Virus record (IMG/VR): IMGVR_UViG_3300044630_006293
Coordinates: 146,832 to 210,831 of that record
Reading direction: 5' to 3' (one strand)
DNA: 64,000 nucleotides
In this document: positions 6,346-6,464 of the stretch, in pieces
Layout of the letters: the number at the start of each line of letters is the position of its first letter
Numbering within the stretch: position 1 is the stretch's first letter
The notes under the pieces: generated by a model
Told to the model about the DNA's origin: nothing
Seen by the model: only the letters and a program-made list of their open reading frames with translations
Database searches by the model: none
Made by a program: the position numbers and the translations under genes

Positions 6346-6464
6346 TGGAGAAGGCAGGACTCGAACCTGCTAACAATCTATATAGATATATGGATATTAT
6401 CGCCATGTTAACTTATGTTAAATGCGCATTATCTATTTAAGAGTTGTTATTCCCATACATCCCC
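6346..6464 (-). ncRNA. minimal tmRNA-like / tRNA-like RNA
   Basis: 5' GGGGATG, 3' GCAGGTTCGAGTCCTGC-CTTCTCC-A (T arm, G3-U pair, A discriminator), no D stem, TAACAA/TTGTTA helix in place of the anticodon arm. Confidence 0.65.

Follow-up and report, generated by a model that had tools for sequence, protein, structure and literature searches.

A conserved tmRNA-like RNA without a tag-coding part in a freshwater jumbo phage

A tmRNA-like RNA of 119 nt, which is conserved and lacks a tag-coding part, is encoded on the minus strand at positions 6346-6464 of the window, i.e., the whole 64-kb stretch of DNA that was analysed. The window makes up the final 64 kb of a viral record that measures 210,831 bp, carries direct terminal repeats and is estimated to be complete. 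The record comes from lake-water metagenomes and represents a freshwater jumbo phage; its portal protein is 34-37% identical to those of Bacillus and Moorella jumbo phages, and a DNA similarity search of the locus against cultured phages gave no match. Positions within the RNA are numbered as 6465 minus the window coordinate.

Detection and anatomy of the RNA

A check with ARAGORN and Infernal, proposed with the initial sequence-only reading of this locus, bore out the assignment. ARAGORN called neither a tRNA nor a tmRNA in the 64-kb window, and Rfam at gathering scores gave no match there. In E-value mode, the top Rfam family was tmRNA (RF00023), at 26.3 bits (below the gathering score of 47 bits) with an E-value of 9.2e-9 in a 601-nt search, or approximately 1e-6 if scaled to the whole window. 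The match runs end to end, from model position 1 to 374, with 35 nt replacing 274 model positions, and within the tRNA clan of Rfam the tmRNA model scores above the others. The pattern of two tmRNA-type ends had a single match in the window, whereas 100 dinucleotide shuffles yielded no match, and no viral contig scanned with the exact pattern of the RNA's own 5' end gave a match. The folding energy of -26.8 kcal/mol (z = -1.48) is unremarkable by itself, and the case for a real RNA therefore rests on its homologues and their covariation. The covariance model of the family (R1) scores 113.7 bits at the window RNA, which is present as a single copy in the 210-kb genome.

The limits of the RNA were set from the sequence, the Rfam alignment, the end pattern and R1. 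Its acceptor stem is formed by the 5' strand GGGGAUG (6458-6464), with G3 of the G3.U pair at 6462, and the 3' strand CUUCUCC (6347-6353), which is followed by the discriminator A (6346) and then by CUG; CCA is not encoded. The pairs are G1-C, G2-C, G3.U, G4-C, A5-U and G7-C, with U6.U as the sole mismatch. The D region consists of unpaired U8-A9-U10-G-G12-G13-A14-A15 (UAUGGGAA, 6450-6457), a stem-less D-loop analog that was delimited by the alignment of the homologues (A2) and by the Rfam alignment, in which it aligns with the GAucuGGaUU segment of tmRNA. A helix in two parts follows. P2a pairs RNA positions 16-24 (6441-6449) with 87-94 (6371-6378), and P2b pairs positions 29-35 (6430-6436) with 77-83 (6382-6388); these strands were placed by covariation and, for the 3' strand of P2a, also by the consensus fold. 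That strand passes directly into the T stem with no GGAC spacer, the junction positions being deleted in the Rfam alignment. The apical domain (RNA 36-76; 6389-6429), as judged from fold and alignment, is an AU-rich hairpin plus a single-stranded stretch. The T arm (GCAGG, loop UUCGAGU, CCUGC; 6354-6370) adjoins the 3' strand of the acceptor stem. The RNA does not form a cloverleaf with a D arm and an anticodon arm; the consensus fold has one long helix instead.

The features first read from the sequence, namely tmRNA-style ends, G3-U, the A discriminator, the missing D stem and a single mismatch, were all recovered at exactly 6346-6464, on the minus strand, which that reading had left unstated. 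An AU-rich helix does take the place of the pseudoknots and tag, as had been supposed, but the middle between the D-loop analog and the T stem measures 79 nt (25% GC, versus 58% GC in the ends) and not about 70 nt.

In tmRNA, Trp122 of SmpB is inserted in a pocket of A15, U17 and A334, and SmpB stacks on C18-G19, where the change G19C abolishes function (PMC8363625). The C18-G19-A20-C21/G333-A334-C335 junction is absent from the window RNA, the Rfam alignment deleting seven and six positions. Possible equivalents of A15, U17 and A334 are left in A14, U16 and A94, all of them invariant in the family; judged by the alignment, the invariant D-loop analog and the U16-A94 pair could correspond to the pocket for Trp122.

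Among the phage genes, none was found for SmpB, an RF-1/ArfB release factor, Pth, RtcB or a CCA-adding enzyme, and the RNA must therefore work through host factors. The phage has six ordinary tRNAs (Gly-UCC, Arg-UCU, Ile-UAU, Met, Asn and Leu-UAA; minus strand, positions 113202-139084 of the genome, outside the window), none of which encodes CCA. The host must therefore add CCA in any case, and the lack of an encoded CCA in the 119-nt RNA, correctly noted at the outset, is not special.

Homologues, covariation and the wider class

The family was gathered from contigs with a homologue of the 345-aa gene that lies upstream of the RNA, and by scanning metagenomes with a pattern derived from three members. 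Nine distinct homologues from lake phages, 114-124 nt long and 60-66% identical to the window RNA, share one fold (alignment A2), in which RNAalifold and a pair count identified 27 pairs in four helices. Across the homologues 95.9% of cells are paired, compared with 83.5 +/- 1.3% in shuffles, and compensatory double changes occur in 12 of the 27 pairs, compared with three at most when the partners are slid by 1-3 columns. P2a comprises eight pairs, six with compensatory changes, is 100% paired and is closed by the invariant U16-A94; P2b comprises seven pairs, four with compensatory changes. The helix that replaces the tmRNA body is thereby bipartite (8 + 7 bp), with ten covarying pairs. In the T arm one of five pairs covaries (C-G to U-A), and position 4 (G/A) is the only one in the loop that varies. 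U8, A9, U10, G12, G13, A14, U16 and A94 are invariant in the family, as are acceptor pairs 1, 2, 5 and 7. Acceptor position 6 is U.U in the window RNA, L251, L254 and L255, U.G in L245/L249, and U-A in L250, L244 and L248. G3.U and the discriminator A are retained in seven of nine members. In L244/L248, pairs 3 and 4 have jointly switched to G-C and A-U with loss of G3-U, which implies that whatever maintains the RNA does not require alanine charging. The apical domain of approximately 40 nt differs in length and shape among members. Synteny is held at considerable distance: L194 (= L245) has a 117-nt version in the same place, between homologues of the 345-aa and 71-aa genes that flank the window RNA, with a flanking protein that is 30% identical.

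That the RNA is tag-less, as the sequence-only reading had it, was upheld when all GCN-to-stop frames of the apical domain were compared, because no tag frame is conserved among the nine members. Position, frame, length, stop and peptide are all member-specific, and some members have no GCN or no stop. The apical hairpin of the window RNA (RNA 38-57) contains two such frames, with AHLT or AFNIS as candidate peptides, and the candidate tag codons sit within a covarying hairpin.

A phage precedent exists in mycobacteriophage DS6A, whose tmRNA is listed as 'TLD only' (TLD, tRNA-like domain) in tmRNA database papers (PMC4131195; PMC11915505). As relayed in those two papers, a similar TLD-only molecule, chargeable or not, strongly inhibits E. 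coli tmRNA, perhaps by titrating SmpB (Mao et al. 2009). The literature searched contained no later paper on phage TLD-only forms, and DS6A is the sole phage case described there. A survey of huge phages relied on ARAGORN, a program that misses these RNAs. The DS6A element (tmRNA Website entry; Hudson, Lau and Williams 2014; Mao et al. 2009) was located at 28478-28557 of JN698994; it is 80 nt long and scores 43.2 bits with the Rfam tmRNA model.

IMG/VR was scanned three times by pattern for pairs of tmRNA-type ends separated by 15-107 nt; at least 214 loci were returned, and at least about 200 matches in viral contigs, 52-135 nt in length, are not tRNAs by ARAGORN. Among the matches listed, two free acceptor positions pair in 86% of unique sequences, approximately 20% lie within 1 kb of a same-strand tRNA gene, and approximately 31% encode CCA. 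When 15 loci were sampled, 14 matched Rfam tmRNA end to end with 68-83 nt, eight of them above the gathering score. The pattern matches and the sampled Rfam matches together show that TLD-only RNAs are widespread in viral metagenomes.

Two other groups of RNAs were encountered. tmRNA-like RNAs of 106-131 nt (L201 5772-5902, L203 63-192, L217 6591-6720, L221 1092-1221; also L135, L163, L175, L149 and L171) have a common internal motif, GAU(A/U)A(C/U)(U/C)GCCCA. Short frames that begin in the manner of ssrA tags (e.g., ASNDN...) may be present in them, and instead of being tag-less these RNAs could be small tmRNAs that encode a tag. A scan of bacterial genomes with the short TLD pattern returned mostly a different, 68-nt D-arm-less tRNA-like class and ordinary tRNA-Ala, and yielded no pointer to the host. 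Many sequences of 67-70 nt from MAGs (within L268-L375) have a G3.U acceptor, a T arm, an anticodon-like stem-loop and a reduced D region; their sources include Solirubrobacteraceae, Acidimicrobiia, Patescibacteria and Planctomycetota, and ARAGORN calls none of them.

The locus and its transcripts

The RNA starts 38 nt past the stop codon of the 345-aa gene (6503-7540, minus strand), which is conserved in the phage group; homologues of its protein occur in approximately 20 viral contigs. Comparison of the protein with Pfam, PHROG, PDB sequences and the Atlas gave no lead, its structural model (pLDDT 80.7) gave no fold match (TM 0.14 or less), and there was no match among cultured phages. The acidic C-terminus, ...DEELPF, is similar to the acidic tip of SSB proteins; the label 'SSB-like' was dropped, as the ...EELPF tail was its sole basis.

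Between this stop codon and the RNA lies an H-type pseudoknot (6471-6497, minus strand) composed of stem 1 (CUAC/GUAG), stem 2 (UGGACA/UGUCCA) and an A-rich third loop, both stems covarying; a 6-nt linker, ACCCAC, then precedes the RNA. All 12 related sequences examined have the pseudoknot, with differing stem sequences and 9-12 bp each, a result equalled by 46 of 2400 shuffles. Besides the window it occurs in L226, L228, L229, L231, L236, L237 (two copies), L245, L250, L251 and L254. The stems are of 4-6 and 4-6 bp, and the pseudoknot closely follows the 345-aa gene's stop codon or closely precedes a tRNA-like element. In the window, L245, L250, L251, L254 and L237, it is 4-8 nt upstream of the tRNA-like 5' end. 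The pseudoknot matched no Rfam family, and no promoter-like site was found between the 345-aa gene and the RNA.

On the other side, 43 nt 3' of the RNA end, is an intrinsic-terminator-like 20-bp hairpin (6303 to 6259) with a U-run (6245-6303 in all, minus strand). The next gene downstream, in the same order in all relatives, encodes a 71-aa protein (MPKQHQSK...; 5849-6064, minus strand) that is highly conserved, with 68-83% identity between the versions of four phages, and is modelled as an alpha-beta3-alpha fold. HicA was considered as its identity but not adopted; the best Foldseek TM of 0.57-0.65 had an E-value of about 1, and Pfam gave 0.15, for one homologue. HicA is reported to cut mRNAs and tmRNA, and the weak resemblance may therefore be of relevance. 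Between the terminator and the 71-aa gene, CCAGACCGCCGAA occurs twice on the minus strand (6161-6173 and 6216-6228, 55 nt apart), with no further copies in the 210-kb genome; similar paired ...CCGAA motifs stand at the same place in L194 and L234, and the pair may be an operator pair. The suggestion that ribosomes of this phage must pause at CGGA sites found no support; the nearby repeats that contain CCGCCGAA are two intergenic copies of one motif and are not coding.

In the phage group, the 300-700 nt behind the 345-aa gene are a mosaic of conserved structured modules. Several have no Rfam match (L224 3530-4200; L226 3530-3830; L229, L232, L242 and L244 3500-4050). One module type contains UCUUAAACGACACUGUGGUGUGCCC, another starts with CCGCAUGGUUAGCGG and ends with CUAACC, and a third starts with GAGUACCUUGGAUAAG and ends with GGGAAAGUCU. 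The tRNA-like module itself varies in kind. A tmRNA-like module with G3.U is present in the window type and in L236, as well as in a 70-nt type that fills the same slot in L006/L238. The 70-nt type scores 47.3 bits with Rfam tmRNA, reaching the gathering score, and the L245 RNA scores 34.7 bits. Other relatives have tRNA-like elements with non-Ala acceptors in this slot (e.g., GCGUCGA, GGAAGUU and GCAUCG), and in relatives other structured modules begin immediately past the discriminator. Both the pseudoknot and a tRNA-like element are missing from the closest sequenced relative (L004/L005; 79% amino acid identity for the flanking gene). Self-cleaving ribozymes were seen above gathering scores in related or TLD-carrying viral contigs: Pistol at L237 876-942 (+) with 65.5 bits, and Hammerhead type II at L017 974-1038 (-) with 44.1 bits.

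Parts of the region were found in six lake metatranscriptomes. Within the 5.9 kb compared, RNA contigs from three runs cover the 345-aa and 71-aa genes, and none covers 4206-5819; coverage of the neighbourhood is gene-specific rather than uniform, and DNA carry-over is an unlikely source of the contigs. One run covers 5938-6486, with a contig (6294-6486) that spans the whole RNA with no differences. In a second run, a contig (6443-6614) crosses from the 345-aa gene into the RNA. This evidence consists of contigs at a depth of 2-8, the RNA itself being covered at a depth of about 2 in one run; a further search of RNA runs gave no additional matches. Elsewhere in the window, 33 nt (3472-3504) were matched with one difference in the middle of otherwise dissimilar metatranscriptome contigs (404-1560 nt); they may represent a small element in common or have matched by chance.

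Possible roles and comparison with known systems

The account that we favour, tentatively and with appreciable doubt, is that the RNA is a processed, probably alanine-accepting, tag-less and stand-alone mimic of the tRNA-like domain of tmRNA, predicted to compete with the host rescue machinery as a decoy or as a tag-less acceptor. The analysis shows the anatomy of the RNA, its conservation and covariation, its lack of a tag frame, its single copy, its place within a transcribed unit and its kinship with a broader set of phage TLD-only RNAs. From these we infer processing, CCA addition, charging, partner binding and an effect on rescue, as follows. The RNA would be transcribed as a 3' extension of the 345-aa gene mRNA; RNase P would release it at G1, and 3' trimming ahead of the downstream terminator would free the other end. 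The host CCA-adding enzyme would complete the CCA, and charging with alanine is probable, as predicted from G3.U and A73. With no pseudoknot ring, resume codon or tag frame, trans-translation by the RNA is impossible. It would instead occupy the partners of host tmRNA, i.e., SmpB, AlaRS, EF-Tu and the empty A site of stalled ribosomes, and ssrA tagging would be reduced or redirected during infection. The function first proposed from the sequence, an SmpB/AlaRS decoy or a tag-less rescue RNA, coincides with the published hypothesis for the DS6A-type RNA and agrees with the inhibition of tmRNA by a TLD-only molecule as relayed in the database papers. It fits less well with the missing C18-G19-A20-C21/G333 junction, with G3-C in two members and with the non-Ala elements in the relatives' slot. 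The mimic reading is weakened by the loss of the SmpB-contact junction, by G3-C in L244/L248, by those non-Ala acceptors, by the lack of any such element in L004/L005, by the low RNA depth and by the sub-gathering Rfam score.

Its main rival, which we regard as rather unlikely, is a cis-acting processing or stability module. The tRNA-like shape would then be mainly a signal for RNase P, together with a 3' endonuclease, and the released RNA would have no function in trans; a cut just past the pseudoknot would give the 345-aa mRNA a protected 3' end and split adjacent RNA modules from one another. The missing promoter-like site before the RNA, the RNA contig across the junction, the 4-8-nt spacing of the pseudoknot from the tRNA-like 5' end, the non-Ala tRNA-like elements in the slot, the modules that start right after the discriminator and the one lineage that lacks G3.U all suit such a module. 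However, RNase P needs just the acceptor/T-arm stack, so that the 15-bp covarying P2 helix and the apical domain are left unexplained, as are the invariant D-loop analog and the fact that most members keep G3.U and A73; tmRNA-type TLD-only RNAs also occur in at least about 200 unrelated viral contexts. Cis-processing and the mimic role are compatible and may coexist. It is conceivable, though doubtful, that the pseudoknot and the tmRNA-like RNA are one bipartite 3'-UTR device, and the 300-700 nt behind the 345-aa gene throughout the phage group an array of such exchangeable RNA modules, belonging to no described family: an RNase P cut at the 5' end of the mimic would leave the mRNA capped by the pseudoknot, and the same cut would free an Ala-accepting tag-less mimic acting on stalled ribosomes.

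Tag-less rescue, as proposed for tag-less mitochondrial tmRNAs, is improbable. The Ala-charged RNA and host SmpB would accept the nascent chain, and host hydrolases would clear the peptidyl-RNA, so that ribosomes are freed during phage-induced mRNA decay without marking for proteolysis. The acceptor, G3.U, A73, T arm and P2 helix are present for charging and A-site entry, in these features the RNA is comparable to a truncated tmRNA fragment, described in PMC8363625, that was crystallised together with SmpB and EF-Tu on the ribosome, and organellar tag-less tmRNAs are conserved together with SmpB (PMC11915505). Yet the SmpB-contact junction is missing, one lineage has lost the G3.U that this model requires, the phage has no hydrolase or release factor, and the TLD-only molecule in E. 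coli was, in the database papers' account, an inhibitor and not a rescuer. Still less probable is an anti-defence decoy that would bait or saturate a host defence protein recognising tmRNA- or tRNA-like shapes, e.g., the predicted SmpB-like domains of CoCoNuT or tRNA/tmRNA-cutting nucleases. Predictions place SmpB-like RNA-binding domains in defence systems (PMC11090510), and the RNA behaves as an accessory, being absent from the closest relative and fast diversifying in its slot; against this, nothing links the RNA directly to defence, and none of its neighbours was identified as a known anti-defence gene. A mini but complete tmRNA that reads a very short tag, AHLT or AFNIS, from its apical domain is very improbable, for all that two GCN-to-stop frames are present there and that two-residue tags are reported in some bacteria (PMC11915505). 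Frame, length, stop and peptide differ in every homologue, the codons lie within a covarying hairpin, and there is no pseudoknot or single-stranded leader. It is scarcely credible that the RNA is a remnant, whether a decayed tRNA-Ala, a captured ssrA fragment or an att-site copy of the 3' end of ssrA. ssrA is a frequent integration site, and the silence of ARAGORN and of the Rfam gathering thresholds would suit a remnant, but both halves are present and mutually paired, compensatory changes mark 12 of the 27 pairs in the nine homologues, synteny is held down to 30% protein identity, and the 210-kb genome has terminal repeats and no integrase beside the RNA. Covariation across phages whose flanking protein is only 30% identical shows that the RNA is neither a decayed tRNA, an outcome that would have refuted the sequence-only reading, nor an integration-site remnant.

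Bacteria rescue ribosomes mainly by trans-translation, a process that is required by, or restricts, several phages. The natural variants of this RNA separate its features, with G3.U kept or lost and the SmpB junction present or absent. They are ready natural mutants with which to ask on which partner the mimic depends and whether rescue is turned off, redirected or replaced by phages. The array of covarying RNA modules around the locus is in addition a source of new RNA families.

Comparable arrangements are known elsewhere. Plant RNA viruses have 3' tRNA-like structures preceded by pseudoknots, and the MALAT1-mascRNA arrangement is similar; these tRNA-like elements stand at or near an mRNA 3' end, after a compact tertiary structure, and are acted on by RNase P or tRNA enzymes. 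Kingdoms and folds differ, and the likeness is one of analogy only. T4 species 1 RNA (rnaC; L378 1909-2047, minus strand), whose record states no function, is likewise a stable phage RNA of approximately 140 nt with a 3' acceptor helix and T arm and no anticodon arm; the 8-bp acceptor-like helix and T arm lie in its 3' 92 nt. In contrast to the window RNA, it has no G3.U and no tmRNA match, and it lies within a tRNA cluster. With R1 it scores 25.1 bits and T4 tRNA-Leu scores 23.6, so that the likeness is generic tRNA-likeness rather than family membership.

Organellar tag-less tmRNAs, in jakobid mitochondria and, at approximately 65 nt, in Mallomonadaceae plastids, are also conserved and reduced to the tRNA-like domain (PMC11915505), but they are cellular, are co-retained with nuclear SmpB and are thought to support rescue, whereas the phage has no SmpB. 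Bacterial tmRNA (RF00023) shares with the window RNA G1-G4 with G3.U, the discriminator A, the T loop, a stem-less D-loop analog with GG, and a P2-like helix leaving the elbow; the window RNA differs in having no PK1-PK4, resume codon, tag frame or helix 5, at one third of the length.

The TLD-only tmRNA of DS6A is of the same kind. Both RNAs are phage-encoded and intergenic, with a short helix that connects acceptor and T arms of tmRNA type, no tag frame and no encoded CCA, and the window RNA agrees with the published definition of a phage TLD-only tmRNA (PMC4131195). In DS6A and in the class of approximately 80 nt from viral contigs, the SmpB-contacting junction UCGAC ... (G)GAC is retained, and a small conserved loop closes a helix of 6-8 bp. 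The window RNA has neither that length, nor the UCGAC/GGAC junction, nor the short capped helix; its type is 114-124 nt long, with a bipartite 15-bp helix and a variable apical domain. Because R1 does not detect the DS6A element, the window form is a separate variant, structurally distinct within a barely studied kind of phage RNA.
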